41,531 bases of DNA from Octopus bimaculoides (GCF_001194135.2 NC_068988.1:37754396-37795926), one strand, 5' to 3'. Positions 9,856 through 40,752 are shown, counted from the first letter of the stretch. Made by a program: numbers and translations. The notes: generated from the sequence alone by a model not told the origin.

Positions 9856-10435
9856 TACAAGTTGGGAATTCCAAGAACTAACCAGCAATAAACAGCCAAT
9901 GATTAGTGACTGCGACGGTTGTTATTATCCATGGTATGGTGCTCGAGATGAAACGGTTGTTTTTCATTGCCCTTCATTAAAAACACAGGAAACTACACTA
10001 GTAATGAATGACAATTTCCATCCACATGTAACGTGGCGAAATCCAGCCAATGAAAACCAAATAGAACCAAATCTCACCAATATCATTCGCAACCAAAGTT
10101 TCTATGTTTGGTTACTTGCATGGAACATGACTACAGGAAAATCTTACATCCTGATGAACATATACTGGACTATGAACTTAGAAATTGTTGTTGACCCACA
10201 CAAGAAGCTTGGCGAACGCGCCATGTTAGTCAGCCCTCAATTCCCAGAACAGCCTATTATCCTCAAAGAGAAAATACCAATACCTCGTTGTGCTCTTTCC
10301 CCACCGAATGCAAACAGTGCCCAGAGACTGGTGTGGAACCCAAAACGGGGTCGGCCTGTTGTGATTATCCCCCCTGTATGGAACAGTAAAAAATCGGCAG
10401 AGAGTCAGATACAAAAACATGACAGTAAATTATGA
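9856..10435 (+). CDS. FAM78: FAM78-family protein (FAM78A/B-like), last coding exon; upstream exon(s) not found in the window
   Basis: Acceptor ttccttttatttcag ends at 9855. The exon reads (x)TSWEFQELTSNKQPMISDCDGCYYPWYG...MNDNFHPHVTW...LTNIIRNQSFYVWL...PNANSAQRLVWNPKRGRPVVIIPP...KL* with TGA at 10433-10435. These motifs match human FAM78A as I recall it (SSWELPDL, ISDSDGVNYPWYG, MNDNFYPSVTW, LTNIYRDQSF, PNANDAQVLMWRPK). The track's ATG at 9818 is intronic. Confidence 0.9.
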
Positions 10436-10454
10436 TGAACTGCTGATTATATAA

Positions 10455-10484
10455 TTACATACATACATAACTTACATTCATACA

Positions 10485-10518
<34 letters not shown>

Positions 10519-10586
10519 AATACACATATACATAAAAACATATGTATATATATAGAGAGAGAGACATATACATACATTCATATATT

Positions 10587-10619
<33 letters not shown>

Positions 10620-10714
10620 TTTACTATAAATATTTTAAGCATTCCAAAAGTTTAAACTCAAAAATATTTACTCATAATTTTTTAAACAATATTTTCACAG
10701 ACACAGACACACAC

Positions 10715-10761
<47 letters not shown>

Positions 10762-10800
10762 ATATATATATATATATATACATATATATATAAAATATTC
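10455..10800. repeat. (TA)n/(CA)n microsatellite cluster in the probable FAM78 3' UTR
   Basis: Long TA and TG runs directly after the stop codon. A similar compound microsatellite lies at 7571-7703. Confidence 0.85.
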
Positions 10801-11220
10801 GTATAAAATTTTTTTTTTTAATGAGTCATATCTGTATGTATGTGTATAGATAAAACATACAACAGGCTCTGTTTAAGTTGAATGTGAATGTATATATAAT
10901 ATTAACACACGGTAACAGAATTTAAAAGCTGCAATTCTGTGAGGAAATAACAAAGACATAATGAATAAAGCCACACAATTGTTATCATCTAAACTATCCA
11001 GGTCATTTGATATCTAAATGTACAAGAAATGATAAAAAGCATTCGGGTACATTTTTGCAGGAATAAAAAATATTTTTAAGATATATTTAATTGGTTTTGT
11101 TACCACCACCTATTAACTATTTGTCATTCAGATTACTCTGTCAAATATAATGCTTATTTAGTCAAAATGTTTTGAATTAATTCATACATTATTTTGTAAC
11201 TTCAAGATTTCAGTGATGTG

Positions 11221-11460
11221 GTTCTATATTTAAGAGACGGGGAATTATGTACATTATTTACATTTGACGGATATTTGTCTTCATTTCGGCTGATATACCC
11301 TCCAGCCTTCATCAGGTGTCTTGGGGAAATTTCAAACCTGGGTTCTCATTCTTAAGGTATTATTATTATTATTATTATTATTCAGGTCACTGCCTGGAAT
11401 CAAACTCAGAATCTTGGGGTTAGTAGCCCACGCTCTTAACCACTACGCCATATGCCTGTG
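11221..11460 (-). mobile_element. tRNA-headed SINE-like element with hammerhead motif, copy 1 (ribozyme 3' half deleted)
   Basis: On -: A box TGGCGTAGTGG (11450-11440), B box GAGTTTGATTCC (11407-11396), (AAT)n spacer, then GACAC CTGATGA AGGCTG..CAGCC GAAA. Inserted into a piggyBac-like MITE; TGTGGTT occurs at both junctions. Confidence 0.8.
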
Positions 11461-11729
11461 GTTGTTTATTTTTAGAATGACATTGTAGGATCAGTGTGAG
11501 AAGCCAGATCTGGCCAATCTGAATATAAATTCAGGTAGGATATGGCTGATTTAAATGCTAAAGGAATAAGGAACTTTCAGCTTTTTTTTAAATATTACTT
11601 TGGGTTTTAATGGTCATATAAATTTAAATATTTATAAAAATGATGTAAGTGCTCATTTTGTAGGATTTGCTTTGACCATTCTTATATTGTCATTGAATAT
11701 CATTATAATAGAATTTCATCATCATAAGC

Positions 11730-13525
11730 ATCACTAGCACAATCTCCTCTCTTGCACACTGCAAATAATTCCTCTCAATACATCTATGCTCTGTTCTACA
11801 TGCATACTGATATTGCACATCCAGTGGATCATACCAATTTCGTTCTTGTCCAACCTTTGCATGTCCTTCTACATTCAGGGCCCACATCTCACCACCATTC
11901 AGTATTGCAGTTCATACATATGCATCATACAATTTTCCCTTCACTTGGAGACAGAGAGACACCTTTGGTTGCCAACAGGGGTAAAAGTTCTCTGAACTTT
12001 CTCTATCCTATTCTTATTCTAGCAATTATAGTTTCTGTACAACCTCCTTCCTCTGTTGCTAATTAGGTTTCTTAAGTAGCAAAAATTATGTACAACTTTC
12101 AGAGATCCACCAGGACAGTTAAGAAAATCAGTTTCTCATGTATCTGTCGTAGTTATAACTCCCACACATCTTCCTCATACAAATACTACTTTCTCTGTTA
12201 ACCTTCCTACTATTCCACTGCATCTCTTGTGTGTCCATAGCTTGCACTGGGTACATCGAATAGAATTTCTGCCTATACATTTCCTACATATCAAGCAGGG
12301 CTATTTAGTGGAAGAGTGAAGAATCCTGTCCAATTTCTTGCTTACTAGGACCTTGGACTTTGCTAAGTTTACTTTAAGAACCTTTGATTCTAGGTTCTGT
12401 TTCCACACCTGGAATTTATTTTCTAATTCTCTCGTGATGGCACCACCATTCGAGCGTGATCATTACCAGCATCGCCTTCCTGGCACTTGTGCCACAGCTT
12501 CGTGTTCCTGGCATATGAAAAGTCATTCGAGCGAGATCGTTGCCAGTGCCGCTGAATTGGCTCCTGTGCAGGTGGCACGTAAAATACACCATTTTGAGCT
12601 TGGCCATTGCCAGTACCACCTAGACTGGTCTTTGTGCTGGTGGCACGTAAAAGCACCCACTACACTCTCGAAGTGGTTGGCGTTAGGAAGGGCATCCAGC
12701 TGTAGAAGCTCTGCCAAATCAGATTGGAGCCTGGTGTGGCGATCTGGTTCACCAGTCCTCAGTCAAATCGTCCAACCCATGCTAGCATGGAAAGCAGACG
12801 TTAAATGATGATGATGATGATGATGTTTTAGATTCTGCTATCAGGGCAAGATCATCAACATATAGTAGTTCTCATGGGTTTCCAATCTTAAATTCCTCTG
12901 TTATGGTCTGGAGGACAATGGTGAGTAGCTGGGGGCTGAGGACCGACTTTTGTTGGAAATCTACTATCACACTAAATTCATCACTAAACTGATGGCCAAC
13001 TCTTACCTTACTAACAACCCAACTGTACATAGCTTGTACTGCTTTCACTTATCATTTGTCTATCTCTAGCTTCCTCAGAGCCCATTGTATAACAGAGCAA
13101 GGTACTTTGTCAAAGGCTTTCTCTAGATCAACAGATGCCAAGTACAACAGCTTGTTTTTAGCTTAATAATTCTCTTTAGTTGCCTGACTATGAAAATAGC
13201 ATCCACGGTGCTTCTTTCTGGTATAAAGCCGAACTGCATTTCATTTAGTATTGTTGTGTTCCTAATTAATATATAACTCTCTCTGCAACTTTCATCACTT
13301 GGTCCAGCAATTTGATGCCTCTATAATTATTTCTATCTAAGGTATCTCCCTTGCCCTTGTAGCAGCTGACTATGATGCTACTGTACCAGTCACTAGGGAT
13401 TACACCTTCCTGAATAACCTGATTAACTATGTGGGCAACTAGACTGTATTCAACTCTACCAGATATCTTAAGCATCTTGGCAATAACTCCTGATGGACCA
13501 GGGGCCTTCCCTGTCTTCATATCTT
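11730..13525 (-). mobile_element. Degenerate RTE-clade LINE, RT region, split by a younger insertion
   Basis: On -: KTGKAPGPSG..IPSDWYSSIIVSCYKGKGD..NNYRGIKLL; DLEKAFDKVP; LLYVDDLALIAES; then, after the insertion, KVNLAKSKVL..CTQCKLWTHKRC; QERRLC. Many stops and frameshifts. Confidence 0.85.
12434..12825 (+). mobile_element. Younger RTE LINE 3' end with (GAT)n tail, nested in the older RTE
   Basis: Ends ...ccatgctagcatggaaagcagacgttaaatgatgatgatg, the same tail as the copies at 1-207 and 28113-28433. Confidence 0.85.
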
Positions 13526-13577
13526 AGGTCAAGAGGTCAGTTAGCTTGATATATACATACACACGCACACCATTATT

Positions 13578-13795
13578 AATGACGAGTTGGCAGAATTGTT
13601 AGCATGCTGGACAAAATGCTTAGCTGTATTTTGCCTGCTACTATGTTCTGAGTTCAAATTCCACTGAGGATGACTTTGCCTTTCATCCTTTTGGGGTTGA
13701 TAAATTGAGTACCAGTGAAACATTGGGGTCGATATAATCAACTACCCCCCCCTCCCAAATTTCAGGCCTGTGCCTAAGTTAGAAATTATTATTAT
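13578..13795 (+). mobile_element. tRNA-derived SINE family B (Meta-domain-like centre), representative copy
   Basis: A-box-like TGGCAGAATTG, B box GAGTTCAAATTCC, centre GACTTTGCCTTTCATCCT..GATAAATTGAGTACC. Other copies on - at about 2465-2672, 2680-2912, 6542-6705, 16705-17005 (tandem partial plus full), 28625-28800, 29430-29600 and 35372-35505. The superfamily label is from memory. Confidence 0.75.
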
Positions 13796-14950
13796 TAAGC
13801 AGTGAGCTGACAGAATCATTAGCATGCCAGGGAAAATGTTTTGGTCTTGTGCCAAAATTTGGAATCATCATCATCATCATTATTATAAAAACCAAAACAA
13901 AACCTTGTAAAATATAGTGACCCAAGGATTCCTAACCAAAATATTAATTTATTATGTTATTTATCAAGCTGATAAAAACAAGGCAGTTTAGTAACTGCAT
14001 TTAATGCAGTCAGCATTTAAATAGACATGAGCATTTACCTGCCTGTTAAATGTCGAAATAAGTTAATATTTTAGCCAGGAAACCCTGGGTAGCTGTATTT
14101 CACAAGCCTCATAATCATATCTTTACTCTCTTAACTGACTGAGTGCTATGCTACTTATTGAAAATCATACCACACAGTATATATATGTATGTGTATATAT
14201 ACATACATATATATATGTTTGTGTGTGTGTGTGTGTGTATGTGTTTGCTTCCCAACTACATAGTTCCAGGTTCAGCCCCATTGCATGGCACCTTGGCCAA
14301 GCATCTTCTACTATAGCCACAGGTCAACCAAAGCCTTGTGAGTGAATTTGGTAGGTGGAAACTTAAAGAAGCCTGTTGTATATATATATCATCATCATCA
14401 TCATCATCGTTTAACGTCCGCTTTCCATGCTAGCATGGGTTGGACGATTTGACTGNNNNNNNNNNTGTGTGTGTGTGTATGTATGTGTATCTTTGTTTGT
14501 TCCACTCCCTATTACTGCTTGAGAACCTGTGTTGGTGTGTTTACACCTCTGTAATTTAGCAGTTTGGCAAAAGAGACTGATAGAATAAGTACTGAGAGTT
14601 GATTTGTTTAACTAAAACCCTTCAAAGTGGTGCTCCAGCATGGCCACAGTCAAATGACTGAAACAAGTAAAAGAATAAAAGAAATATATACATACATAAT
14701 AGGCGCAGTAGTGGCTGTGGGGTAAGTAGCTTGCTTACCAATCACATGGTTCCAGGTTCAGTCCCACTGCATTGCACCTTGGGTAAGTGTCTTCTTCTAT
14801 AGCCTCGGGCTGACCAAAGCCTTGTGAGTGGATTTGGTAGATGGAAACTGAAAGAAGCTCATTGTATATATGTACATACATTCCCTACTTTTAGGTCACT
14901 TTAAACAGAACCCTTAATTCAATAACACTGTGTATAAACTCTGTATTTGG

Positions 14951-15118
14951 AATGACCAATTTCAAAGACAGTTGGATTTTAATCATAGGGTATTGGAATT
15001 TTAATAATGGATTTACAAATGCAATGACCAATCTTAAAGACTATTGGATTTTACTCACAAGGTTTTGGAATCTTATATGTATACCATTCTGTCTAAACAA
15101 TGGATTTACAAATACAAT
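14951..15118 (+). repeat. Imperfect tandem duplication (72-bp unit plus a 96-bp unit)
   Basis: Both units start AATGACCAAT (14951 and 15023) and end AATGGATTTACAAAT. Confidence 0.75.
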
Positions 15119-15186
15119 ATCCTTGCATTCACTCTCTATTTCCTATCCTATCTAAATTAGTTATTGCTTAACCATCCTCTTACACC

Positions 15187-15234
15187 GTCTCCGATGAAGG
15201 GATATAATAAATATCCTGGAAACAGCTGTAAGAC
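15187..15234 (+). ncRNA. Degenerate hammerhead-like motif of a second, unrelated repeat (probable Penelope-like pseudo-LTR relic)
   Basis: GTCT CCGATGA AGGGATAT AATAA ATATCCTG GAAAC AGCT GTA AGAC. Stem I GTCT/AGAC, stem II GGATAT/ATATCC, palindromic ACAGCTGT. The core has U4 changed to C. Confidence 0.45.
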
Positions 15235-15720
15235 CTATTTATAAATGTTCTAAAATATACACAGCCTTGGTTTTTTTTATCTCATTACGAAAAGTAAACC
15301 CTTATATATGTGTGCGTGTGTTTGTCCCCCCACCATCGTATGCAGTTCGGCAAAAAGAGAACGATAGAATAAATACTAGACTTACAAAGAATGAGCCATG
15401 GGGTCAGTTTGTTTGACTAAGGGTGGTTTTCCAGCATGGCCACAGTCAAATGACTGAAACAAATAAGAGTATACATACACACACACACACACATATATAT
15501 ATGTTGTCAGAAGTTCATATGTCCAAAAAAAAGCATACTCTAAAGCATTAGAGCAGTAATATATTTTTCCAGGTAGTTAAAAGTTATGGCTAGTCATAGA
15601 GTGACTTTGGTTTCGCACCCATTAAGTGTTTAGCAGTATTGGCAAGTCTGATGAGTCATCTATACTGTTGCTTTATAGGTGTGAGACTAATAGTCACCAG
15701 GCATAACTTTTAACTTCCTA

Positions 15721-15970
15721 ATTATATACATTATTATGTACATTATTTACATTTGATGGATATTTGTCCTCATCTTGTTTGTTGTTAACACGTTTCTGCT
15801 GATATACCTTCCAGCCTTCATCAGGTGTCTTGGGGAAATTTCGAACCTGGGTCCTCATTCCTAAGGTATTTTTAGATATTATTATTATTATTCAGGTCAC
15901 TGCCTGGAATCAAACTTAGGATCTTGGGGTTAGTAGCCCGCGCTCTTAACCACTACGCCATATGCCCGTG
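15721..15970 (-). mobile_element. tRNA-headed SINE-like element with hammerhead motif, copy 2 (mutated)
   Basis: Colinear with copies 1 and 3. Stem II has a C-to-A change (CAGCAGAAA) and 3 nt are missing after GAAACG. Confidence 0.8.
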
Positions 15971-17218
15971 TATATTTGTAAATAATGTCCTAATTATATA
16001 TATCCATTTACTTTTGTTTGGGCAAAGGTCTAGGAAGCATTCTGAAAAGCTCCTATGCTCCTCTGTCACCTACCACCTGTTAATTCCACCTTCCAAGGTA
16101 ATCTGACGGTATGATTACATAGCATGGAACTCCTTTCAGCTTAAGATAAATATAATAACAATAACTTGTGGATGGAAATTCATAGTCTTTATTAATGCAT
16201 ATGTTTCTACACCACTCACATTCATTAAATAACAATTTTCCATGTTCCTAAGATATTAAGATCGCACTTAATATTTGTGAATTTGGAATTTTTTCAATTC
16301 CATTCCAATGTAGGTGTTTCCACAAGTATCACATTTTCGTTTGTGTTTTTGTGTTTTGTCTCTTCATCTCATACACAATTGTCTTATCATTTTATGACTT
16401 TATTTAACATATCTCTTTATCAGTGCAAACATAGTACTTGATTAACTTGGTTATTGTAAACTTATTTTATTTTTTATTCTCGATTCTTATATATGTATTT
16501 TACTTACAATTAATTGTAGGAAGTTTCTTCATTCTAAATCATTCTCACTCATGATCTCTTCTGTTCCCCACAAGCCACTTGCAAATAACAAAATAATATA
16601 ATTGAAATAAGTGAAGTACCTTCTGAAAAGTCACCTGACAAGGCACATTTGCACCGAATGATGCATCACAACCAATCATGCAGAATCATTAATAATAAGA
16701 AAAATCCTTTCTACTGAAAGCACAAGGCCTGAAATTTTGTGGGAGGGGACTAGTTGATTGCATTGACCTCAGTTTAATGGGTACTTAATTTATCAACCTC
16801 GAAAGGATGAAAGGCAAAGTCGACCTCATCACAATGCCTGAAATTTTGTGGGAGGTGACTAGTCGATTACATCAATCTCAGTGCCTAACTGGTACTTATT
16901 TTATTGACCCCAGAAGGATGAAAAACAAAGTCAACCTTGATGAAACTTGAACTCAGATCATAAAGTCAGACAAAATGCCACTAAGCATTCTGCCAGCTTA
17001 CTGCCTTGATAATAATAATGATATACAATGTTGCAAGTATTTAGAATATTGAAGAAAATTAAAAGGATATTAATATAATAATCAAAATAAAATAAAAACG
17101 AGAAAATATAATATAAAAACAAGACAAGTTTATGCACCAATGAGAAATTAGAGATGATAATAAAAATGTTAATATAACTAAATATACATACACACACACT
17201 CATCTATATATATCGTTA

Positions 17219-17761
17219 TTATTTTCTATAATAATGCCCCTTATATAAATATAAACGAATAATTATATTCTTGGGAATAGAAATTTCCCTTATGAATTTT
17301 TTTACACACTGGCTTCTTGATAAAATTCTTGTAAAAGAGTTTTATCCCTTTTTGAATTTACTTATCAAATATATACACGGAATATATTCAATGTTGAATT
17401 TTTATTCCTGTCCCCACATGGGTACCCAGAAGCAACCCGGAAGTATTCCCGCCTCCTTGATGAAGATATATACAGATAAACTTCATTCCCTTTACTCTGT
17501 CGGATACGTAGTGTGTTCGTTTTTGGTGAGGTGAGAATTCTGTTTATTTATATATATTTTTGGGACAATACTGTGCTGATGAACGAAATCTAGATTCATT
17601 CTAGTAATCGCGAAATCAGTCGATACACAGTTCAGTTTATTTAAAAGAAAGTTGGTCTTCTGTTGGTTGTTTTTCCTCGCATTAGGTACTAAATTGTGGT
17701 TATTTTGAGAAGTCCACTGTGTGGCGTTATTTTCTATAATAATGCCCCTTATATAAATATA
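17219..17761. repeat. Perfect 35-bp direct repeat pair (17219-17253 and 17727-17761) around a unique 473-bp segment
   Basis: TTATTTTCTATAATAATGCCCCTTATATAAATATA occurs at both positions. Confidence 0.9.
17435..17453 (+). promoter_or_regulatory. Candidate ETS (GABP/ELK-type) site with adjacent GC-box-like motif
   Basis: CCGGAAGT at 17437-17444 and CCCGCC at 17448-17453, in a locally CpG-richer island. A donor-like GAG|GTGAGA follows at 17530/17531. Motif evidence only. Confidence 0.3.
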
Positions 17762-18892
17762 TATATATATGCGCACACATATTACAGTATGTAGGTTACA
17801 GAAACAAGTATACTATGGGTTAGAGAATAACAGAACCAACCAGATTAATTATACAAAGCTTGGTACCAGTAGATATTACGTATCAAGTTTGAAGTAAGCA
17901 AATGTCCTTCCATAATGCAAATATTTCAACTTAAGTTCAGGTGTCTTATTAAGCAGGTTACCAAGATATTTTAATATTTCGTATAATTCAGAACAACACA
18001 TCCTAAAGTCTGTTGTTTAAATATGGGGACACTTTTCTATCTATACTCCAGGCGATTTCAAAACTGAGTTTTATTGTCACTTAATTTCCATACATTTTAA
18101 GCAAAGGATGTGATGCAAACTTTGCGATATCGGAAAGATAATTATATAAACTAGATTTAAAGTTACAAGAAGTTGGGCTTATATAGGTAAAGATATTAGC
18201 ATAGTCATTATATTATACTTGCAAACTATTATTTGCTAAACAGGTCCTACTGAGTGAATAGGTATCCATTATCACGACAGTTGTACATTCTGGGGGTAAC
18301 CCAGTGATTCTTATCACAATTATTATATAAATTGTGAAATATTAAGACTAATAGAATGATTCAAAGATTCAACCCTATTACTATAGTGTAATATAGAGTA
18401 GCATTGTTATTTACAACACTTAAGACATATATTTAATTGCATCAGAATTATTATAGTTATTAGTTAATACATGATATTTGTAAAGTTTGTGTTATCAACC
18501 ATTATTCTCATAGCCCCATCACCACTGTTTCCATGTACATGAGAAGGATTAGTGTTATTATTGACAAGGAATCACAAATTGATGACAATATCAACAGGTA
18601 CATGGCTGCTAGCAAGGGCATTCAAGCATGAATCATCCGAATTCCTACTACATTTTTTAGGTACGCAGTTAAGCACTCTGTTCTTATGGTTATTGGCTGT
18701 GCCAACAAAATTCTCCTGTTCTGTACAATCCCTCATATTGTTTATATTATTATTTATCTTATCTCTTATTTCTGCTCCAAAAAAATGTATAGCCACTTCC
18801 AACTTTAATTTACACATAGAGCAGCAATATCAATATCATATGAGCTAATTACTTTTATTTTTCTTAACGTTATTATTATTATTTGGAACAGA

Positions 18893-20002
18893 AAGCTGGC
18901 TGATGAACTAAGAATTCATGGTGGTGGTTTTGCTATTAAATTGACTCTACTTCACAAGTTGTCATCCATCCCTCAAGCTGTTAATGAGCATCTCTTGACA
19001 TTCTGTATACCCATAGGTAATTCTTCATCTATGCACGTTATCAGCATCCGAACAAGAACATAAGATTTTCCACTCCAAATTGGAGACAATTGTCAGTAAA
19101 ATTCCATATCATGACAATGTCATATTGATGGGCCATCTTAATGCCAGAATAGGTAACAAACACACACTGTGGTCAAAAGTAATAGGAAAACATGGAACAC
19201 GAAAGATGCATGTAAGTGGTTTATGACTGGTGTCTTTTTGCCAAAAGCTTAGTTTAACAATTACAAACACAACGTTTCAGCAGCCAGATAAATATAAAAA
19301 CACCTGGAAGGATCCCTGATCTGGTAGCAATAACAGTCAATCATATGCCAGCTAAGAACAAAGATTGCAATGATTTCAGATTAACCAGAACTCACAAAAC
19401 TCCCAAGTGTTACTTGGATCACACAATGGTTTGCACTTTAATCCAGTATACCTCTGAGAATGTGTCTTCTTTAAAAGAATCCAGAAATGACAAAAGATTT
19501 TAAAATACATCCAAATTCAAAGCTTGAGAATACAGAGGAAAGCAATGACCTTGAAGTTTTGTGGTGAAATATTTGCGACAGCATTAAATCATCTGCTAAA
19601 GTTTTAGGATTCGTAAAATGCAAGCATTAAGAATGGTAGGATGAGAACAATTCTCAAATCAAGCCTCTCCTAGAAACTATGCACAAAAGATACAAGCCAT
19701 GGATCTCAAACAAAACTTCACCAACACTCAGATGTCTATAAATCTCCTATAAGAAAACTACTCAGAAAGTAATGTGAGATGAAAAATTCTGCATGGGCAA
19801 AAAAACCCCAAGAATTCGAATGGGTTACTAACTCTCACAACTTGGGAGTTGTATGACAATTTGAAAGGTGTATTTGGTAATAAAAAACAAAAAAAAAAAA
19901 AAGGCTGGTACAGAACCTGTTCTTTCTAACAATGAGTCAAAACACTTAAGTAGCAAAGATGAAATTCTGAAAAGATGGGCAGAACACTTTAAATCCATAT
20001 TG
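18893..20002 (+). mobile_element. Old RTE/BovB-like LINE fragment (AP endonuclease and linker)
   Basis: Reads HGGGFAIKLTLL..INEH-like; LETIVSKIPYHDNVILMGHLNARIG..WSKVIGKHG..LTITNTTFQQPDKYKNTWKDP; KDEILKRWAEHF. Multiple stops. Confidence 0.75.
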
Positions 20003-20995
20003 ATCATCATCATCGGTTAACGTTCGCTTTCCATGATAGCATGGGTTGGACGATTTGACTGAGGACTGGTGGACCAGGTGGCTACACCAGGCTCCAATCT
20101 GACTTGGCAGAGTTTCTACAGCTAGATGCCCTTCCTAATGCCAACCACTCAGAGAGTATAGTGGGTGCTTTTACGTGCCACCGGCACGAAGGCCAGTCAG
20201 GCGGTACTGGCAACGGCCACGCTCACAATGGTGTATTTTACATGCCACCTGCACAGGAGTCAGTCCAGTGGAGAATGTAAAAATGAATATTTACACTTAA
20301 GAAAACCAATGTATGACCTCACCTGTGCTGGACCATAAATTGAAAGATGTGAGTATGGTATTGGTTCATCCATGTGTATAGGTATCTTGGTGTGGATATA
20401 TCTGTGTGTGTGTATATATATATATATATGTAGATATGTTTATTTGTTTGTGTGCTTGATGATATATGTCGTGCTTTGTGCATATGGACCTTCAGTTATC
20501 ATAACTGATCCTATTCTGATGTTTGTAACCTAGTGATCTGACATCAGCACACCCCTATTCTGTCTCTCTCAATGGCTTTATATCTTGCAATTCTTCTTCT
20601 GTCATTCTCTTAAATTGATGGTGAGAGATAAAGCTTAACAGAAATGATTTAGTGTTGTCTTCTAACTTAACAGGTTTACGATAATTACTTGTATGATAAA
20701 TGACCATGAGTTGGTACAGAGTCACTCTTTCACTAGTTTCCAAAATGAGAGGGTCAACACACACTCTATATTTTGATATTTTTTCAAGATGTATTTGGTG
20801 TATTCATCAATAAAAAGTACATCTGAAACAGCTGTAGTGAACTTCCCATCTGTGTTCTTCATATAAGTTAAAATATAGATATATGGACGCGCACGTGTGT
20901 GTGTGTGGGGGTGTAAAATGAATAATAAAATGGTTTACAACTGGTAACTTACTAATAAAGCAGTCACTTTCATTTGTCATATACGTGTGTGTGTG

Positions 20996-21026
<31 letters not shown>

Positions 21027-21858
21027 ATGTATGTATGTATGAGGTGTGGGAGAGGCAGTTGGATATACTCAGTTGCTTATGGTTGAGGGTAATGAGTAGA
21101 ATGTTCTTATCTATCGTAGGAACTGTTATATTTGTAGTTTTGTGGGGAGTAGAATTAGAATCTTATTGAGCTAGATAGTTCTTAAGCTTAATATTAGACA
21201 AGAATTTTTTTTTTCGCGAGAAACCACTAAGTGGAAAGTGCTTAAAATTTCTTTTTTAATTCATTCATTCCCAATGAACATACACTTTCACTAAGACTAC
21301 AAATTTAAAATTCTCTACTGAATCCTAATGCACTTTTTTCAAAAATGGAGTTAGTAACTTCTGTTATTGTTTGCCATGGCTTATCGAATTTCCATATGGT
21401 CAGATTTTTTTTCTACCCTGAAGACAGAGGCTCGATTTATCCAATGTTTATTTGCTTCCATTACCGGTTGCATATTCTGTTGAACTACATCTGCCAACAT
21501 CGTGAAGGAACTCCAAGCCTCCAGAAACAGCTGTCAGACTTGTAACACCATACCTTCTCTCCTTTAATATATAAATATATATTTATATACGAATATTCAT
21601 TGCTTGAGAATTTTCAGTCTTTGCTTTCTCTCTATTTATTATGTATACTTGCATATTTTTTTAATATCAAACCCAAGCAGTTTTATTTATTTATTTGCAT
21701 CAGTCTCCATATCTACTCACCTGGATTCCTCCTATAGCCACTGTTTACCCAGCAGACTTGGTTCCTCATAGACATTAGAGTGTAAGTTCAAATCATTTGA
21801 GCACTACAAAGTGTTTTCTATATTGAGAATCTCTGGATCCCATCTGTTGGCTCTATAC

Positions 21859-22022
21859 CAGTGCTCCACAACGGTATACCCTGGCACACTGGTGTGCCAC
21901 AGTAAAACCTGAACATAATTTTTTCCCTCCATACTTTTAGTTATATTTTTAGTTCAGGTGTGCCACTGAATTTTGAAAAGAATATAAGTGTACCGCAAAT
22001 GAAAATAGGTTGTGGAGCTCTG
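21859..22022. mobile_element. hAT (Charlie-like) MITE
   Basis: 14-bp TIRs, CAGTGCTCCACAAC and GTTGTGGAGCTCTG (13/14 match). Exact 8-bp TSD CTCTATAC at 21851-21858 and 22023-22030. Confidence 0.85.
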
Positions 22023-22572
22023 CTCTATACAAACATATATACACGAGAAAGTTAAAACAATGTTTACAATCTTGGAAATTTGCTATGTCAACATAAGAAA
22101 GTTTGTATGTCAACATACAATCATTTATTTAAAAAAACATCTTTCGATTGTTCAGTCTGCTTTTAGCAAATTAAAACGAAAAAAATTATGTACAAAATAA
22201 ATCAACAAAACAACAACAAAAGTACAAAAAAAATGGTAATGCAGAAACCAGTTCATAATGTTCTGTTATGTGTCCAATTCAATTCCTAGAAATAATAAAT
22301 GGAGAGAAATCCATCTCTTTGTCCTGCATTGTTTTGTCATTTAACTGTTTCTTTACTCATCTTCATCCAACTGCCTATACAACACCAGAGCACAAACACT
22401 ACCACCGTCATTATCATCATAAAGGTCTGTTTGAGAGAAGAAAGGAAAACCAAGCAAAAGGTATTTTAATATAACAAAGCTAATTAGACACAGGAATTTA
22501 AATGTGACTGATGGAGGATTTGGCTGTAGGTAGTACACGACAGGTATGTTAAATGGTATGAGAGAGAGACAC

Positions 22573-22603
<31 letters not shown>

Positions 22604-22706
22604 CATGTAAAAGAATGTGTTTGTCTGGAAGAATTTTCTTTTGTCAAAGAACCAGCAAAATGGTGATAAACTAAGTCTTTTAAATGGTTTCTTTGCTTCC
22701 AACCAT

Positions 22707-27589: not shown

Positions 27590-28404
27590 TTGTGTACGAA
27601 CAGCCATGCTACATGGCAGTGAAACATGGGCTGTGACTGCTGAGGACATGCTTAAGCTCGCAAGGAATGAAGCCAGTATGCTCCGCTGGATGTGTAATGT
27701 CAATGTGCATACCCGTCAGAGTGTAAGTATCTTGAGAGAAAAGCTGAACATAAGAAGCATCAGTTGTGGTGTGCAAGAGAGACGATTGTGCTGGTTTGGA
27801 CATGTGGTGAGAATGAATGAGGATAGCTGCGTGAAAAAGTGCCACACCCTAACAGTTGAGGGAACCCGTGGAAGAGGTAGGCCCAGGAAGACTTGGGCTG
27901 AGGTGGTGAGGCNNNNNNNNNNNNNNNNNNNNNNNNNNNNNNNNNNNNNNNNNNNNNNNNNNNNNNNNNNNNNNNNNNNNNNNNNNNNNNNNNNNNNNNN
28001 NNNNNNNNNNNNNNNNNNNNNNNNNNNNNNNNNNNNNNNNNNNNNNNNNNNNNNNNNNNNNNNNNNNNNNNNNNNNNNNNNNNNNNNNNNNNNNNNNNNN
28101 NNNNNNNNNNNNGCCAGTACCGCCTGACTGGACTTTGTAGGGTTTTCAAGCGAGATCGTTGCCAGTGCCCCTGGACTGGCTCTTGTGCGGGTGGCACATA
28201 AAAGACACCATTTCGAGCGTGGCCGTTTTCGTGCAGGTGACACGTAAAAGCACCCACTACACTCTCTGAGTGGTTGGCGTTAGGAAGGGCATCCAGCTGT
28301 AGAAACTCTGCCAAATTAGATTGGAGCCTGGTGTTGTCATCCGGTTTCACCAGTCCTCAGTCAAATCGTCCAACTCATGCTAGCATGGAAAGCGGACGTT
28401 AAAC

Positions 28405-28433
<29 letters not shown>
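27590..28433 (+). mobile_element. 5'-truncated RTE LINE: C-terminal ORF, 3' UTR and (GAT)n tail; spans a 200-nt gap
   Basis: ORF 27606 reads MLHGSETWAVT..NEASMLRWMCNV..QERRLCWFGHVVRM..EGTRGRGRPRKTW, typical of the RTE C-terminus. Tail (GAT)n at about 28405-28433. Confidence 0.88.
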
Positions 28434-28435
<2 letters not shown>

Positions 28436-32276: not shown

Positions 32277-32441
32277 CTGGAAATTACAAATGCACAGAAG
32301 ATATACATACATATTAATATATTCATACAGTACAAGTTAAATCATAAATTTCTTGACAAATAACCAATTAAGAACTCCATATCTATTTCCTTTCATATAT
32401 TATCATTTTATCCTTTATTAAATTTGGGCCTTAGTATTACA

Positions 32442-32930: not shown

Positions 32931-35626
32931 TCAATTTCAATTTCAGATTTCAAACACAGGGTATATTTAGAAAAGAAAAGAAACCAAATTTGTTTATAAT
33001 CTATTTAATTATTTGATGATTTGACAGTGGGTGCAGGTTGTATAATTTGCATTATATAACCAATAATGGGATGAAGCACTAAAGAATGACCTTAGAAAGA
33101 ATGCTGAACCGTTCAGGCGAGATGACAAAGAATGGAGATGCCTAGTGCCTTGCTGTGCTCAAAATCCGATCTCCACAGTAAAAGCATTAAACCAGTCCCC
33201 TCGTGGTAAAGATAGACTTGCAAGAGCGCTGTGTCAGTGCCATGTGAAAGTGCTTGCACAGGGCCACATAAAAGCACCCATGTGGTGTCATGTAAAAGTG
33301 CCTGTGTAGTACCATGTAAAAGCACCGAGCACACTCTGTAAAATGGTTGGTGTTAGGAAAGGCATACAGCTGTAGAAACCATGTCAAATCAGACTGGAGC
33401 CCAGTTTGCCAGCTCTGGTCAAATCACCCAACCCATGCCAACACAGACAATGGACATTAAATGATGATGACGATAATGAAACACATAAAATGTGGTGAAA
33501 TTAACCCTTAAGCATTTAGATTACTCTGTCAAATGCAATGCTTGTTTATTCACATTGTTTTGAATTAATCATGCATTATCTTGTAGTTTTGAGAGGCTGT
33601 ATCTGGCTGGTTTGAACATAAAACAGGTAGAATATTTGGACTGGATGTGGCCGGTTTAAATGCTAAAACCACCTTAAGTTTTATTTTATTTTCTACGTGG
33701 CTGTGTGGTAAGAAGCTTGCTTCCCAACCATATGGTTCCAGGTTCAGTCCCACTATGTGGCACCTTGGGCGTCTTCTACTACAGCCATGGGCTGACCTAA
33801 GCCTTGTGAGTGGATTTGGTAGACAGAAATTGAATAAGCTTGTCATACATGTGTATGTGTCTCTCCATCGTTGCTTGACAACTTGTGTTGGTGTGTTTAC
33901 GTTCCTGTAACTTAGTGGTTCAGCAAAGAGACCGATAGAATAAGTACTAGGCTTAAAAAGTAAGTCATGGGGTTGAACTGTTTGACAGAAATCACTTCAA
34001 GGCAGTGCTCCAGCATGGCCACAGTCAAATGATTGAAAAAAATAGAAGACACATATATATATATATATATATATATCTTGTATCTTTTATTTGTTTCAGT
34101 CACTGGACTGCAGCCGTGCTAGGGCATCACCTTCAAAACAGTATATACATAATAAATGGCTAAGATTTTAAACATAAATGATAGGCATAAACATGGCTGT
34201 GTGGTAATGCTCACTACATAAGCACGTGGTTTTTAGGTTTCTATCCCATAGTATGGAATCTTAGGAATATGTCTTCTATAGCAACATGCTGAGCAATCTT
34301 TGTGAGGGAAATTGGTAGAAATTGTATGGATGCCTGAAATGTGTGTGCAGAAGTGAAGATTCATTTACATTTGTCTTTGTATGACATTTTGGGGGTAAAG
34401 TGAGATCATGTTTACGACTAGTGTACATAACATATGCTGTAACTCAATGAAGACCAGTGGAATAAAAAGAATACCTTAGTTGTAAAGCAGATAAGGACTC
34501 ATCATCATCATCATGGTACATAAAAACGTTCATGCAGTAGCCCTACATAAAACATCCATGCAGTGCCACATAAAAGCATCCAGCATACTCTGTAAAGTGG
34601 TTGATGTTTGGAACATCCAGTCGTAGAAACCATGCCAAATTAGCCTGGAGTCTGGTGCAGCCCACCGTCAGCTTGCCAGCTCTGGTCACACTGTCCAGCC
34701 CATGCCAGCATGCACAAAGGATGTTAAAAGATGATGCCTAATATAGTGAAATATCACATTTCACTTCCATAATTACGATGAGAGTTAACTCACAAGAATA
34801 TAAACAGTATAAATTAACAGCTAAGATTTTGATGGAAATAATATAGTTCAGCCCATTCAGCGGGGTGGTTGGTGTTAAGACAGGCATCCAGCTGTAAAAA
34901 CTGTGCCAAAATAGACACAGAAGCGTGGTGATGGCTTCTGCCTGGCCAGTTCCTGTCAAACTGTCCAATTCATGCCAGGATGGAAGGAGGACGTTAAATG
35001 AAGATGATGAATATAAGACACAGGCACTAATTTGAGAAAGGAGAGGCAGCAGATAGTCTGTCATCTAAATGATAGCTGCATAGTAGGGCTCTCTTTTAAT
35101 TAAGTGGAAGAGCAGCACTCCTGACTACATAAAAGATCAGGTCAACTCTTATCAAAACACTTATGATCAAAGGTATACAAGCCGTGACCACCCTAGATTA
35201 TCCAATGCATCCTTTTGTTTTTTGATACAATAGAACCTGATTTTGAGAGACAATTGACTACTATTTCTTGCAGGTCAAGTAACTACATAGCATAAGATAG
35301 TACTCTATCTGAGTGTGACACTAGATCTCACAGACAAGTGATGTAGGATTGTAAAGGACACAGATATACTACACAGGTTTCAAATTTTGGTATAAGGCCA
35401 GCAATTTCGGGGGGAAAGGGCTAAGTCAATTACATCAACCCCAGTACTCAGCTGGTACTTATTTTATCGACCCCGAAAGAATGAAAAGCAAAGTCAACCT
35501 TGATGCAAACACTGATATACCATATTTGCAAACCTGTTTAAGCGATAACAGCATTAAATATGGATATGATGATGATGATAACGACATTGTTAATCAAAAT
35601 GGTAAATTTTAAAAATATCAACTTAC

Positions 35627-35698
35627 CTGGAAGGAGCCTGTCCAAAAACAGATGCTGTTGAAGCTGCTGATTGTACAAATGCATTTGTTTTGAAGGTA
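35627..35698 (-). CDS. NUP214: NUP214-like nucleoporin exon (72 nt)
   Basis: Acceptor tctcttacag, donor AG|gtaagt, phase 2 to 2. Reads (N)TFKTNAFVQSAASTASVFGQAPS. Confidence 0.85.
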
Positions 35699-35930
35699 CT
35701 GTAAGAGATTTAAAATATAATATTAAATGGAAAAAAAAAGGAAAAAAAAATTAAAACCAAAGCAACTCTAAGTACTTCTGTGTAACAATGTTTTAAATGT
35801 TACTCCTGTACAACATGATCCTGTGTTTGTAAATTTTTCACAAAGTCCTAAACTGGAGACATAAATGCTTACTTTTTTATCCTGGAGATTGATAAACCAA
35901 GAGCTACCAATAGCTTTTATATATACATAT

Positions 35931-36142
35931 ACTCTTTTATTTGTTTCAGTCATTTGACTGCAGCCATGCTGGAGCACCGCCTTTTTAGTCTAGCAAATCG
36001 ACCCCAGGACTTATTCTTTGGAAGCCTACTACTTACTCTATCGATTTCTTTTGCCGAACCACTAAGTTACAGGGACGTAAATACACCACCATCGGTTGTC
36101 AAGCGATGTTGGGGGGACAAACACAGACACAGACACAAACAT

Positions 36143-36173
<31 letters not shown>

Positions 36174-36344
36174 CATATATATGACAGGCTTCTTTCAGTT
36201 TCCGTCTACCAAATCCACTCACAAGGCTTTGGTCGGCCCGAGGCTATAGTACAAGACATTTGCCCAAGGTGCTACGCAGCGGGAATGAACCCAGAACCAT
36301 GTGGTTGGTAAGCAAGCTACTTACCACACTGCCACTCCTGTGCC
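35931..36344 (-). mobile_element. tRNA-derived SINE family A (CORE-like centre, internal (TA/TG)n), full-length copy
   Basis: On -: A-box-like and B-box-like (GGTTCATTCC) head, CACCTTGGGCAA centre, microsatellite, tail ending GACTGAAACAAATAAAAGA. Other copies at about 232-362(-), 2063-2170(+), 6115-6514(-), 9160-9455(-), 14255-14685(+), 14701-14875(+), 15305-15470(+), 24835-24995(-), 33697-34046(+) and 36745-36895(-). Confidence 0.8.
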
Positions 36345-37823
36345 TATATATATATATATATATAGGGGAGGCAGGATAGTGCTTGTGACTTCTTTCAGGG
36401 ACCCTGAGACTAGTTTAACAAAGGAAAGAAGCTGTCCTCCAGAGACCTGGCCCAAATGCTTGTGAAAAAGTGTGAAATGCTAAAGGAATGCAAGGACCAG
36501 ATGATGGTACTAAACTAAACAGAGCAAGTTTAACACCAGAATATGGTCTGGGATGCTTTCAGCATGTTGCAAGCATTCAAGTTGGGTCTCAAGTCTAAGG
36601 ATAAGTTGATATCTTGATGTGCTGTTTATTTCTGTATCATTGCTTTCTGTAGAGTCTCTTTGGTGCAGATTTCTGCTGGTGAACAATTTTTTTGTATACT
36701 CAAGTAGATACAAGAGCTGTTGAAACATAAGTATACACATATAACAGGTTTATCTTAGTATCTGCCTACCAAGTCCACTCATAAGACTTTCATCAGCCCA
36801 AGGATATAGTAGAAGACACTTGTTCAAGATGCTGTACAGTGGGACTGAACCTAAGACCACAGTTGGAAAGCAAGCTTCCTAACCACACAGCCATGCAAAA
36901 ACAAACATTAATTGAAGAATCATTCAATACCTTATGCTTTTTTTGTTTTTCACAAAGAAAAAGAAGACAATAACTTTAAAGTTTTGTCCCAGTCTAAGAC
37001 AAAAGCAACTAATCTAAAACTTCAAAGCCACCACTAGCACTTTTCCTTGTGAAAAATATAATTAACCCTTTAGCATTTAAACTGACCATATTCAGTCCAA
37101 ACACAAACTGTTTGATGTTCAAACCAGCCAAATCTGACCACTCACATCTATACTATAGTGTCATTTTAAAAGTAAATAATGACACCACTGAAATCTCAAA
37201 ACTACAAGAAAATGCAGGATTAGTTAAAAAAACAATGTGGATAAATAAGCATCACTAAAGGGTTAATATATTCATGTGTGCATGCTTATAATCTTTTGTT
37301 ATATATTGACAAAACAATCAGTGTTCTTTGAACAATGTCAAATGTGTCAGAAACTTTTGTGTCAGTCACACCCATCAGGTATATTGTGAATCAGTGATTA
37401 TCCCATTAGAAAGCTGTAAATAATGATGTTTACAAATTGCATTAATAAAATAGCATATTCCAGTTGGTGAGCGAGCCTATATGTTGTAGCCCAACATGCA
37501 AGAAACAATAGCTAAATCTCTCTAAAATCAAACCCTATTGTCACAGAAAGAACAAACAAAATGGTCGTAGTGGCTAATGTAATCCAAGTTATACTACATT
37601 TGAGAGAAAAAATTGGTCAGGTCATTTTGATTGTACATTTGCTCAATCAGAGTTGACCTTGGGTTAAACAACATCAACAGACATACATACATACATACAC
37701 AGGTTGAATTGAATTACAAGCCAGTTTACCCTATGTGGTTTGGGCAAAATAGGAAGAAAAACAACAAAACATAAAAAATGACAACGATGATGATAAAGTC
37801 CAAGAATATGCAGGTATACGTAC

Positions 37824-39810
37824 TTGTCTGTTGAACCAAAAACTGACTGATTAAATGCAGTCATTGGAGTTGTGCTCGTCTGCCCAAAAAGACCTGTAGC
37901 CTTGGTAGAAGCTGCAGGAGATGCTGAAGCCTGCCCAAACACAGACCCAGTTTTAGACTGAGAGAACAGTGTCTTGGCTGTACTGAAGGCAGCTCCAGTG
38001 TTGCTGGCATTTGAATCATCAATACTACTAGAGCCACCAATTGCTGTATTTGCAGGTAAGCTAGCAACTTGACCAAATAGTCCAGTGCTGCTGCTGCTGC
38101 TAGAGTCTTGACAAAACAGTCCTTTGGGTAAGGGGTTACTCGTGGATGATGTAGGAAATGTGCTTTGGGTGAACAGGTTAGAAGTTTGAGTAGTTGGTGA
38201 TTTGAATGGTTCAGCAACAGTTGATGGCGTTGAAGTGTTTGTTGTCTGTACAGGTAAACCAAAAAGTGTATTGGCAACGTTGGCAAAAATACTGGCAGTG
38301 CTCCCAGAGGGCATGTTTCCTGAGACTGTTGAGACAGCAACACCTGAGGTGGGATTACTGGTACTGGCTGGAGTGTTAAAACACATTGTGAACATATTAG
38401 TTGTGGTAGCTGCAAAGGCAGTTGTGGTTGACACGGAAAACGTAGATGGTGCTGTAGCTGTCGTAGAAGCAGACGAGGCACCGAACAAAGTACTAGGAGG
38501 AGTAGGAGCAGCAGTAATTGTAGTAGAAGTAGCTGCTGTTGGAACAGTTATAGATGTGGAAGCAAGAGCTGAGAAAGTAGTAGTAGGAGCAGCAGTTGCA
38601 ATAGAAGGAACTGTAAATGAAATAGTATTAGTAGTGGTGGTTGTCATAATAGGAGTGGTAGGAGATGAAGCAGCAAGTGTTGTCGGATCAGAGATAACTA
38701 CATTAGCCACTGGTGAAGTTAGTGAGGACAAAGCTGGAGAGAGAGTTGCACTTTTTGCAGTCAATCCTGAAGGTGGCGGGAAAGTCAAAGACTCTTCAGT
38801 TTTCAGTGAAGTCAGCTTTGGAAGGTTATTCAAGGCGGAGAACACAGGCACTTCATTTGAAGTTAATGATGTTGTTGCAGGTACTGCTTGTGCAGCTGGT
38901 GCTGTAGCTACTGCAGTAGGTGCAGCAGAAACTACCTCAGTTGCCGAAGGCATTACTGCATTTTGTTTGTCAGTAGTAACCTCAGATGTGGTGCTGCCAG
39001 CAGGAGGGAACGACTTGAAAATCGATGTGGTGGGCATTGTAAATAAACCTGCAGCAGGAGAAACAGCTGCAGTGGAGGTTGTTGTCTGATGGGACTGTTG
39101 TTGCGGCAAGCTTGTACCTGTAGATTCAATTCCAGTAGAGGTTACACCAAAAGAGAAACCCTCTGTTGGAGCTTGCAAGGGGTTTTCGTTAAACATCTGT
39201 AAATTGTTCAAACACTGTGATGTAGGTATCGGCTTCAACTTAGTGGTTGCAGCTGCATTTGGAATGGACGTATTTGGTGCAACTATTTCATTAGTAGCAG
39301 TAGAAGTAGTGGTGGTGCCAACTGTAGAAGGAACAAATGAAAAAATATTCTGAGCATTTTTAGTATCTGTAGCAGCAACTGCAGTGCCAATTCCAGTATT
39401 CTCTTGAGAAAATGAAAATATTGAGTGTTTTGAAGTTGGAGCAAGTGGCTTTGAGGGATCATTAGCTGAACTGGTATTAAACTTTGAACCAGAGAATGAA
39501 AATGTTGCTGTGCTATTGCCAAATAAGCCCTTGCTAGTTGATTCCTCAGATGATTTGGGGGTGGCAAGAAGACTTCCAAGAGTTGAAGATTGTTCTGGGG
39601 GCTTGAATATTTGTGACTGTGGCTTGTTAGTATTGGCTAAAGGTGGAGATTTGGTCATTTGTGTTGTTGTAAACTGATTCACCTTGGTTGATGTAGTTGC
39701 CAAAAAGGGGGACGATGCACCAAGCTTGTCAGCAACACCAACTACATAGGGAGGATTTGCAGCAGTTGGTAATTTCTGAGCAGATTTTGAAGACTCTTCA
39801 GTTGTTGCTG
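37824..39810 (-). CDS. NUP214: NUP214-like nucleoporin, 1987-nt S/T/A/P-rich and FG-repeat exon
   Basis: Acceptor tttcttttccctaattttattacag, donor AA|gtacgt, phase 1 to 2. In frame with track ORF 37664..39703. Contains FG motifs (GLFGN, FSFG, TLFGA, TLFGL, GLFGQ, SVFGQ, SVFGS). Confidence 0.88.
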
Positions 39811-40533
39811 CTGTAATAAAATTAGGGAAAAGAAATTAAAAACAAAAATTGAAGACATCTATGAAGATATAAGTTACAGAAATGAATGTCATCATCTTTA
39901 TTTAATGCCTGTTGTCCATGTTAGCATGGGTTGGACAGATTGACCAGAGCTAGCAAGCTGGGAAGCTGCACCAGACACCAGTCTGATTTGGCATGGTTTC
40001 TATGGCTGAATGCCCTTCCTAATGCCAACCACTTCAGAGTGTGCTGAGTGCTTTTACATGGCACCACACAGGCACTTTCGCATGGTGCTGCACAGGTGAT
40101 TTTATGTGGTGCCGCACAGAAACTTTTATATGACACTGCATGGCTGCTTTTATGTGGCAGCCACACATAAATAATAAAGGTTTCTTACTAAGGTACAAAA
40201 TCAACTTCAGTTGCGAAGAAGTACAGTCACACTGATACCAGTATTATAAATGGTAACATGTACACAGATGTACATAAGACAAACAAATACACTCTCTCAT
40301 AAAACAATATGTATGCAGTGTGAGGACCTGTAGAGTAATGATATCCTTTATTTGAAAAACAGTTTAAGGGTTGGTAACAGGAAGAGGATGCAGCTGTAAT
40401 GTAAAATCCTACCTTGAATAAATCCTCTTTCAAGCCCATGCTAGTCTAGGAAAAACGAACATTAAACAAATAAGGAGAAAAAAAAGCATAGAAAAAGGAA
40501 GAAAAATACGATTAAAGGAACACCTTTACTTAC

Positions 40534-40752
40534 CGTCAGCTTGCTTCTCTTCTGCTATGTCAAGAGCTGAATATTCTTCTACATCCTCTTCCTCTTCCTC
40601 TTCTTCGTCGTCGTCTTCCTCCTCTTCCTCTTCACATTCTTCTTCGTCTTCATCGTCATCCTCGTCGTCTTCCTCTTCTACTCCAAGACAGTCATCACCT
40701 GTCACAGATTCTGCTGAGGAGATGTCTTCTAGGTTGAGGCTACTGGCATAAT
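40534..40752 (-). CDS. NUP214: NUP214-like nucleoporin, acidic exon (first exon in window; gene starts beyond the right edge)
   Basis: Acceptor cattcctttaag, donor gtaagt, 219 nt, phase 1 to 1. Reads YASSLNLEDISSAESVTGDDCLGVEEEDDEDDDEDEEECEEEEEEDDDEEEEEEDVEEYSALDIAEEKQAD and joins in frame to the next exon. Confidence 0.75.

Follow-up and report, generated by a model that had tools for sequence, protein, structure and literature searches.

A convergent FAM78–NUP214 gene pair in Octopus bimaculoides and its probable descent from a bilaterian gene neighbourhood

We analysed a 41,531-nucleotide (nt) stretch of the Octopus bimaculoides genome (GCF_001194135.2 NC_068988.1:37754396-37795926; hereafter the window, meaning that whole stretch), in which a gene of the FAM78 family on the plus strand and a gene for the nucleoporin NUP214 on the minus strand end tail to tail. 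The window holds the 3'-to-3' junction of two single-copy genes, the octopus FAM78 pro-orthologue and NUP214, and in our reading their convergent adjacency would be a surviving piece of an ancestral bilaterian neighbourhood. That neighbourhood most probably had a phosphatase of PLPP6/7 type head to head with FAM78, and FAM78 tail to tail with NUP214; in octopods the block would have been stretched by repeat insertion, giving a 12.3-kb spacer and a FAM78 gene of more than 100 kb, with the FAM78–NUP214 junction left unbroken. We hold this account, of an inherited bilaterian neighbourhood that was stretched in octopods and kept its junction, to be very probably the best explanation of the locus, and inheritance of the pair itself from the bilaterian ancestor is well supported.

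The two octopus genes and their junction

The features that make up the junction are given below. The z scores come from local alignments compared with 300 composition-preserving shuffles, against exons of the gastropods Haliotis asinina and Lottia gigantea; Glandiceps talaboti is a hemichordate.

9856..10435, plus strand: last coding exon of FAM78, a split codon and 192 codons, with a TGA stop at 10433-10435.
10436..22706, no strand: spacer between the stop codons, 12,271 bp, with repeats like short interspersed nuclear elements (SINE-like), a degraded long interspersed nuclear element (LINE) and microsatellites.
40752-40534, minus strand: acidic exon of NUP214, rich in aspartate and glutamate, the most upstream in the window; its phase fits the next exon (G+CA).
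39810-37824, minus strand: large exon of NUP214, 1,987 nt, rich in serine, threonine and alanine and in phenylalanine–glycine (FG) dipeptides; Pfam Nucleoporin_FG falls below threshold (E = 0.007).
32276-32020, minus strand: NUP214 exon with the signature FSGLGGKPSEENANQNIFG; FSGLGAKPSQEAANKNPFG stands at the aligned position in Xenopus Nup214.
30166-29996, minus strand: FG exon of NUP214 (ANLFGSQASASGF...QQQ), which aligns to Xenopus and human NUP214.
27189-26976, minus strand: FG exon of NUP214 (SAFGGSPSF...PGFA), with z = 5.3 against the matching Haliotis exon and an alignment to human 5dis_D.
26215-26073, minus strand: FG exon of NUP214 (FAQSSSPTFGSLAQTSPVQGF...), with z = 4.5 in shuffle tests against Haliotis and 6.4 against Lottia.
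24590-24566, minus strand: micro-exon of NUP214, 25 nt (GFGSAPTFG), with GTAAGT as donor and a pyrimidine-tract value of 0.85; it ranked top in a phase-constrained search.
22740-22707, minus strand: last coding exon of NUP214 (..QSASFTDYRS), with a TGA stop at 22709-22707 and the same phase as in Haliotis, Lottia and Glandiceps.

The FAM78 exon is preceded by an acceptor AG at 9854-9855 and a polypyrimidine tract, and its 192 codons (open segment 9857-10432) are identical to the C-terminal 192 residues of the O. bimaculoides protein 'FAM78B isoform X1' (P0035). In a database search, molluscan FAM78A-like and FAM78B-like proteins were 53-79% identical over the entire octopus exon, with E values down to 1e-102, and a profile built from twelve of these retrieved 264 proteins that bear the name FAM78A or FAM78B and come from animals as far apart as rotifers and mammals. 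Similarity to the family spans the conserved C-terminal two thirds of the protein and includes family-invariant motifs such as DCDG..YPWYG, NDNFHPHVTW and PPNANSAQ. The octopus protein is 44-47% identical to vertebrate A as well as B proteins. Neighbour joining of 32 FAM78 proteins, a distance method run here without support values, gave a tree that follows the species tree, with the octopus protein among the molluscs and with vertebrate FAM78A and FAM78B in one vertebrate-only clade. Because the vertebrate A and B proteins form that single clade, the octopus gene is the pro-orthologue of both.

No tblastn match to earlier FAM78 coding sequence was found in positions 1-9855, and the window holds the last coding exon only; the annotated octopus coding sequence spans 105 kb, and the FAM78 coding range in the octopod Argonauta is 113 kb. 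Such octopod coding ranges of 105-113 kb stand against 1.4-12 kb in the other molluscs sampled. The octopod proteins (P0035, P0036) also carry an extra N-terminal stretch of about 90 residues, poorly conserved and modelled with low confidence. Pfam has no model for FAM78. An AlphaFold model of the octopus protein, built on a 32-sequence alignment, is all-beta, with a predicted local distance difference test score (pLDDT) above 90 for residues ~115-370, and comparison with solved structures in the PDB gave no significant fold match (best E 0.02, template-modelling score at most 0.38).

On the opposite strand, the eight NUP214 exons have AG/GT at all boundaries and compatible codon phases, and when spliced they form a single open frame of 1,015 codons, which encodes 24 FG dipeptides and closes with ...QSASFTDYRS before the TGA. 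The 25-nt micro-exon was included because joining 26073 straight to 22740 loses the reading frame, which the micro-exon restores; the model that omits it was rejected, since its frame shifts and runs past the real stop. In Lottia the equivalent micro-exon, AFGSSNNPPSFG, is about 36 nt long. Haliotis has none, and an exon of this kind is readily missed by gene predictors.

The identity of the nucleoporin is carried by its C-terminal end. When the last 281 octopus residues were searched with phmmer against all PDB chains, only two distinct sequences matched, both NUP214: that of Xenopus (7tdz_s, 7vop; E = 7e-14), whose residues 1777-2033 of 2037 align with query residues 5-277, and a human FG fragment (5dis_D; E = 9e-5). 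No other FG nucleoporin was matched by this query. The PDB alignment covers the non-repetitive signature of exon 32276-32020 together with its frog counterpart, and the octopus FG-repeat domain is collinear with that of vertebrate NUP214 up to the C-terminus. A pattern drawn from the signature, GLGG[KQ]PS..AN.N.F, occurs once per locus in the octopus window, in Haliotis and in Lottia, each time on the strand that runs towards FAM78.

Comparison with the gastropods extends this assignment to the exons. The Haliotis gene convergent with FAM78 encodes 2,060 amino acids (aa) and carries PF16755 (Beta-prop_NUP159_NUP214), and its 3' exons pair one-to-one with those of the octopus. Matching exon pairs in Haliotis and Lottia reached z = 4.5-13.7, with none of the 300 shuffles attaining the observed score, against z = -0.6 and 1.6 for non-matching control pairs. 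The peptides that precede the stop are also alike (octopus FTDYRS, Haliotis SSPQFTSYRG, Lottia SSSFSSYR, Glandiceps QSFGGWR). Standard searches were less productive: a 996-aa FG model of the octopus protein had no match at E <= 0.001 in a large-database protein search, and the last 131 residues matched nothing in the PDB, where the longer query that includes the GLGGKPS exon succeeded. We attribute these failures to biased composition, which triggers the bias correction of HMMER, and not to missing homology. PDB searches with the C-termini of Glandiceps and Lottia likewise found no match, so their assignment to NUP214 rests on the exon-wise shuffle tests and the terminal peptides. On these alignments the octopus minus-strand gene is identified as NUP214.

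Between the two stops we found no recognisable host exon. No Pfam domain (E <= 0.01) was detected in stop-free segments of 45 aa or longer from either strand, Rfam and tRNA scans of the spacer were empty, and in the O. bimaculoides annotation (GCA_001194135.2) the first 10 kb past the FAM78 stop contain no called gene; the remaining 2.3 kb, which abuts the NUP214 stop, is probably the 3' untranslated region (UTR) of that gene, and both 3' UTRs presumably lie within the spacer. Repeats that recur elsewhere in the same window make up at least 23% of the spacer. A blastn search of the spacer against nine other loci, Haliotis, Lottia and Glandiceps among them, returned two short simple-sequence matches only and no conserved non-coding sequence.

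An earlier, sequence-only reading of the window had described a FAM78-family gene and a NUP214-like gene meeting tail to tail, with stops at 10435 and 22707 and no host exon between them. The stops proved correct to the base, 12,271 bp apart, and the position at which that reading closed the pair, 40752, is the first base of the acidic exon. Its calls of both genes held, FAM78 through the identical O. bimaculoides protein and the tree of 32 proteins, and NUP214 through the exclusive PDB matches and the exon-by-exon correspondence with the PF16755-bearing Haliotis gene. The gap between the genes stayed empty of host exons in the Pfam, Rfam and tRNA scans and in the annotation up to 10 kb past the FAM78 stop.

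The neighbourhood in other animals

For comparison we took the FAM78 locus of each species with 10-kb flanks, so that the comparison covers linkage within that range. Haliotis shows the arrangement most compactly, with a PLPP6-like gene on the minus strand, FAM78 on the plus strand and a convergent NUP214 on the minus strand, the stops of the latter two lying 1.9 kb apart. The same two genes face each other in Lottia, with a GH10 glycosidase gene between FAM78 and the NUP214 exons.

Lottia L001 15083-17780, plus strand: GH10 gene.
Lottia L001 20956-18720, minus strand: 3' exons of NUP214, uncalled; their end is about 7.3 kb away from the stop of FAM78.

In the Lottia annotation NUP214 seems to be missing or cut short. 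In the octopod Argonauta hians a convergent gene of 2,106 aa starts 5.4 kb after FAM78, and in Glandiceps a convergent gene of 2,276 aa, ending ...GQSFGGWR and the stop, lies 6.6 kb downstream of FAM78; the convergent pair is very probably present in both. In the intron upstream of its last three exons, the Glandiceps gene also contains a tandem repeat (L008 21600-22618; period about 212 bp).

Among vertebrates, published gene order in cattle runs ...LAMC3, NUP214, FAM78A, PLPP7 (PMC12171144), with NUP214 at 101.323-101.414 Mb and FAM78A at 101.451-101.465 Mb of chromosome 11, so that the gene ends are 36 kb apart (PMC8391191). In goose, one single-nucleotide polymorphism is annotated to NUP214 and FAM78A jointly (PMC12757490). 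The same adjacency and orientation were found in protostomes (octopus, Haliotis, Lottia with its insert and, by size and strand, Argonauta) and very probably in a deuterostome, Glandiceps, with the vertebrate adjacency taken from papers.

A third gene belongs to this picture. In six spiralians (Lottia, Haliotis, Ylistrum, Liolophura, Owenia and Lingula) the FAM78 start codon is preceded, at a distance of 0.5-1.1 kb, by a phosphatase gene of the PAP2 family on the other strand. Four of these phosphatases were rebuilt; database records name them 'PLPP6-like' or 'phospholipid phosphatase 6', and in vertebrates PLPP6 and PLPP7 are paralogues.

L001 7518-9144, minus strand: PLPP6-like gene, head to head with FAM78.
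L002 8196-9508, minus strand: PLPP6-like gene, in the same geometry.
L003 6195-8943, minus strand: PLPP6-like gene, in the same geometry.
L004 7025-9215, minus strand: PLPP6-like gene, in the same geometry.
L005 6609-9321, minus strand: PLPP6-like gene, in the same geometry.
L006 8265-9482, minus strand: PLPP6-like gene, in the same geometry.

Given this head-to-head gene in six spiralians and PLPP7 beside FAM78A in cattle, the ancestral unit was likely a three-gene block, with PLPP6/7 and FAM78 divergent and FAM78 and NUP214 convergent, and that block is intact in Haliotis. The trio is incomplete in Glandiceps, where PIN1 lies upstream of FAM78. The octopus window contains no PLPP6-like sequence, and the 10 kb that precede the FAM78 start are free of called genes in the octopods O. 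bimaculoides and Argonauta.

The divergent PLPP6-like/FAM78 pair is kept more widely than FAM78–NUP214 and looks like a bidirectional-promoter pair. Just past the PLPP6-like gene, Owenia (L005 1-815) and Lingula (L006 1628-5862) also have a peroxiredoxin gene (AhpC-TSA), which suggests that a longer conserved block exists in some spiralians.

Repeats and assembly gaps in the window

The window is AT-rich (32-43% G+C), with spliced genes and many microsatellites and interspersed repeats. Its gaps and main repeat families are these.

14456..14465, no strand: assembly gap in the spacer, 10 N long and within a nested repeat, flanked by collinear halves of one SINE-like copy.
27913..28112, no strand: assembly gap of 200 N in the NUP214 intron between exons 30166-29996 and 27189-26976, with continuous phase.
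141-355, 2073-2170, 6097-6517, 9156-9457, 14195-14389 and 14466-14877: six copies of a SINE-like repeat, about 450 bp long, that has a microsatellite inside it.
15345-15473, 24819-24981, 33697-34073, 35918-36364 and 36732-36903: further copies of the SINE-like repeat.
1-207, 12526-12833, 20003-20271, 28145-28425, 32438-32636 and 39889-40065: second interspersed repeat, of about 300 bp, with weaker copies besides.
11693..13523, minus strand: degraded LINE with reverse-transcriptase-like open segments, recognised by motifs in translations (for example ...FGFIPERSTVDAIF...), with no Pfam hit over threshold.

The gap at 14456-14465 can be judged from its flanks. The left flank (14196-14389) aligns with 36364>36171 of the intact SINE-like copy at 35918-36364, and the right flank (14466-14690) with 36155>35918 of that copy, the orientation being unchanged; immediately to the left of the gap is one end, 68 bp long, of the second repeat family. 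It is best read as the unassembled inside of a nested repeat insertion at one locus, with a true size of probably a few hundred bases instead of ten, and the flanks support continuity, short of proof.

Across the intron that contains the 200-N gap, the codon phase fits (G+CC). A hidden exon in this gap was considered and rejected on that phase, on the same consecutive exons in Lottia and on the lack of extra human NUP214 residues at the junction. Neither of these two gaps touches an exon or breaks the frame. Two more gaps, 5311-6025 and 9287-9296, lie upstream in the FAM78 intron, and both 10-N gaps (9287 and 14456) fall inside the microsatellite core of the SINE-like repeat.

That repeat has at least 11 copies in 41.5 kb, and neither ARAGORN nor Rfam found a tRNA-like part in it. 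The second repeat translates as ...WLALGRASSCR.SAKSDWSLV... in several spurious open reading frames (ORFs) and could pass for a gene family; its copy of about 300 bp at 12526-12833 breaks the degraded LINE at 11693-13523. A LINE ORF2 tail (...RLCWFGHVVRM...; 27606-27911, plus strand) ends at the 200-N gap, and the NUP214 intron that precedes the acidic exon contains a mariner/Mos1 HTH_48 fragment (41017-41232, plus strand; Pfam E = 3.5e-7).

Descent of the pair, its alternatives and known systems

The same two genes recur together, convergent in octopods, two gastropods and very probably a hemichordate and adjacent in vertebrates, and we infer that the arrangement is shared by common descent. 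Independent origins in molluscs and deuterostomes would accommodate the scallop, the chiton, Owenia, Lingula and the priapulid, all without the pair within 10 kb, but such origins have to contend with this recurrence and with a PLPP6/7 gene beyond FAM78 in cattle as well as in the two gastropods, an independent trio being very improbable. The chance of an independent immediate convergent adjacency in several phyla is negligible, roughly 1 in gene number per lineage, and because gastropods and mammals have the same pair and the same third gene beyond FAM78, independent assembly is not credible; we give coincidence next to no weight. Nor do we put much faith in a scaffolding error at 14456-14465 as the origin of the adjacency. 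The sole physical link in the window does cross that gap, and both of its flanks are repeats, but the flanks are complementary collinear halves of one repeat copy, an independent assembly, that of Argonauta hians, has the convergent 2,106-aa gene 5.4 kb past FAM78, and the Haliotis arrangement is the same and unambiguous; an artefact is extremely unlikely. That the FAM78–NUP214 adjacency in the window crosses a 10-N gap is nonetheless one of several points that weigh against inheritance. The 5' part of octopus NUP214, beta-propeller included, falls beyond the window end (41531); the Argonauta neighbour is identified by size and strand only; and the Glandiceps call depends on three short low-complexity last exons with z = 2.7-5.7, against controls of up to 3.2. 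The human strands at 9q34.13, NUP214 forward and FAM78A reverse, are general background, and the cattle and goose papers supply the adjacency. Finally, no NUP214-like sequence was found within 10 kb of the FAM78 stop in the scallop Ylistrum, the chiton Liolophura, the annelid Owenia, the brachiopod Lingula, Priapulus or the sea urchin Diadema, where other genes or nothing lie downstream of FAM78. Close adjacency has been lost or pushed apart many times, and about half of the sampled lineages are without it; it is not retained in most of them. The sequence-only reading had suggested that the pair may predate the protostome–deuterostome split. That age is well supported by Haliotis, Lottia (with its insert), Argonauta and Glandiceps and by the published adjacency in cattle and goose; among other invertebrates the adjacency was seen in Haliotis and, with the insert, in Lottia, very probably occurs in Argonauta and Glandiceps, and within 10 kb was missing from scallop, Owenia, Lingula, chiton, Priapulus and Diadema.

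An inherited pair could have been kept by selection, either as a regulatory block in which NUP214 is a large bystander or through 3' ends that interact by termination or antisense overlap; the same reading had proposed shared enhancers or interacting 3' ends. The pair has lasted for more than 550 million years in three phyla or more, many ancient pairs have been ascribed to coregulation or regulatory blocks (Irimia et al. 2012, PMC3514665), and the ancient microsyntenies of cephalopods are significantly co-expressed (Schmidbaur et al. 2022, PMC9023564). However, the stop-to-stop distance is unconserved (1.9, 5.4, 6.6, 7.3 and 12.3 kb in invertebrates, more than six-fold, with the 36 kb between gene ends in cattle beyond that), the octopus spacer is largely repeat and transposon debris, Lottia tolerates an inserted gene between the two, six lineages are without the pair within 10 kb, FAM78 is no known developmental regulator and convergent pairs cannot share a promoter. 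As to shared non-coding elements, the spacer gave the two short simple-sequence matches with the nine other loci. We consider it unlikely, though worth entertaining, that selection keeps the pair, and passive survival of a short unbroken junction is likelier than active constraint; a regulatory block with elements inside the NUP214 introns is possible. A more specific version takes in all three genes. NUP214 is a component of the nuclear pore and vertebrate PLPP7 (NET39) is a membrane protein of the nuclear envelope, and from these one may speculate that FAM78 also sits at the nuclear envelope. That the PLPP6/7–FAM78–NUP214 trio was kept by a functional or regulatory tie, with FAM78 a nuclear-envelope or nuclear-pore-associated factor, strikes us as a long shot; if it were true, the position of FAM78 would be a real clue to its function. 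The clue to FAM78 function that had been hoped for from the pair was not obtained, and neither the neighbourhood nor the structure work gave a direct one.

Inheritance with passive survival of the junction therefore remains our preferred account, and with it the NUP214–FAM78 neighbourhood, probably with PLPP6/7, would date to the bilaterian ancestor. Having outlasted the large reorganisation of coleoid genomes, the junction offers a usable anchor for orthology and synteny maps, and it provides a concrete pair on which to ask whether regulation can hold tail-to-tail neighbours together. The sequence-only reading had set its survival against the loss of much ancestral microsynteny in coleoid genomes. 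The junction does survive, but this is less remarkable than implied, because 275 ancient metazoan microsyntenies are retained in Euprymna against 216 in scallop (Schmidbaur et al. 2022, PMC9023564), and survival of a block in a coleoid is thus expected, not exceptional. The names NUP214, FAM78, PLPP7 and PPAPDC3 are absent from the supplements of that study, and our literature search found no paper that joins FAM78A, NUP214 and 'synteny', or NUP214 and 'microsynteny'. The pair is a new, or at least not demonstrably listed, case among the hundreds of known ancient microsyntenies, and with hundreds of such blocks described it leaves the general view of microsynteny unchanged.

The closest known counterpart is the mammalian NUP214–FAM78A–PLPP7 neighbourhood of 9q34 type, with the cattle block (PMC12171144) as its documented order, which has the same two genes as immediate neighbours as in octopus and, as in abalone and limpet, a member of the PLPP6/7 family on the far side of FAM78. 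Vertebrates differ in having two FAM78 and two PLPP6/7 paralogues, with only FAM78A and PLPP7 adjoining NUP214, whereas the octopus has a single FAM78; the octopus in turn differs from the cattle block in having no PLPP6-like gene in the window and no gene called within 10 kb upstream of the FAM78 start. Head-to-head pairs with bidirectional promoters share their geometry with the PLPP6-like/FAM78 pair of the six spiralians, whose starts are 0.5-1.1 kb apart. FAM78 and NUP214, by contrast, lie tail to tail, and a shared promoter is no explanation for them. Unlike the coregulated ancient pairs, FAM78–NUP214 is known here from gene order alone. It resembles the pairs of Irimia et al. 2012 (PMC3514665) in joining unrelated genes that would have been adjacent since the bilaterian ancestor, and, like the blocks of Schmidbaur et al. 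2022 (PMC9023564), it survives in a coleoid whose introns and intergenic DNA are enlarged.

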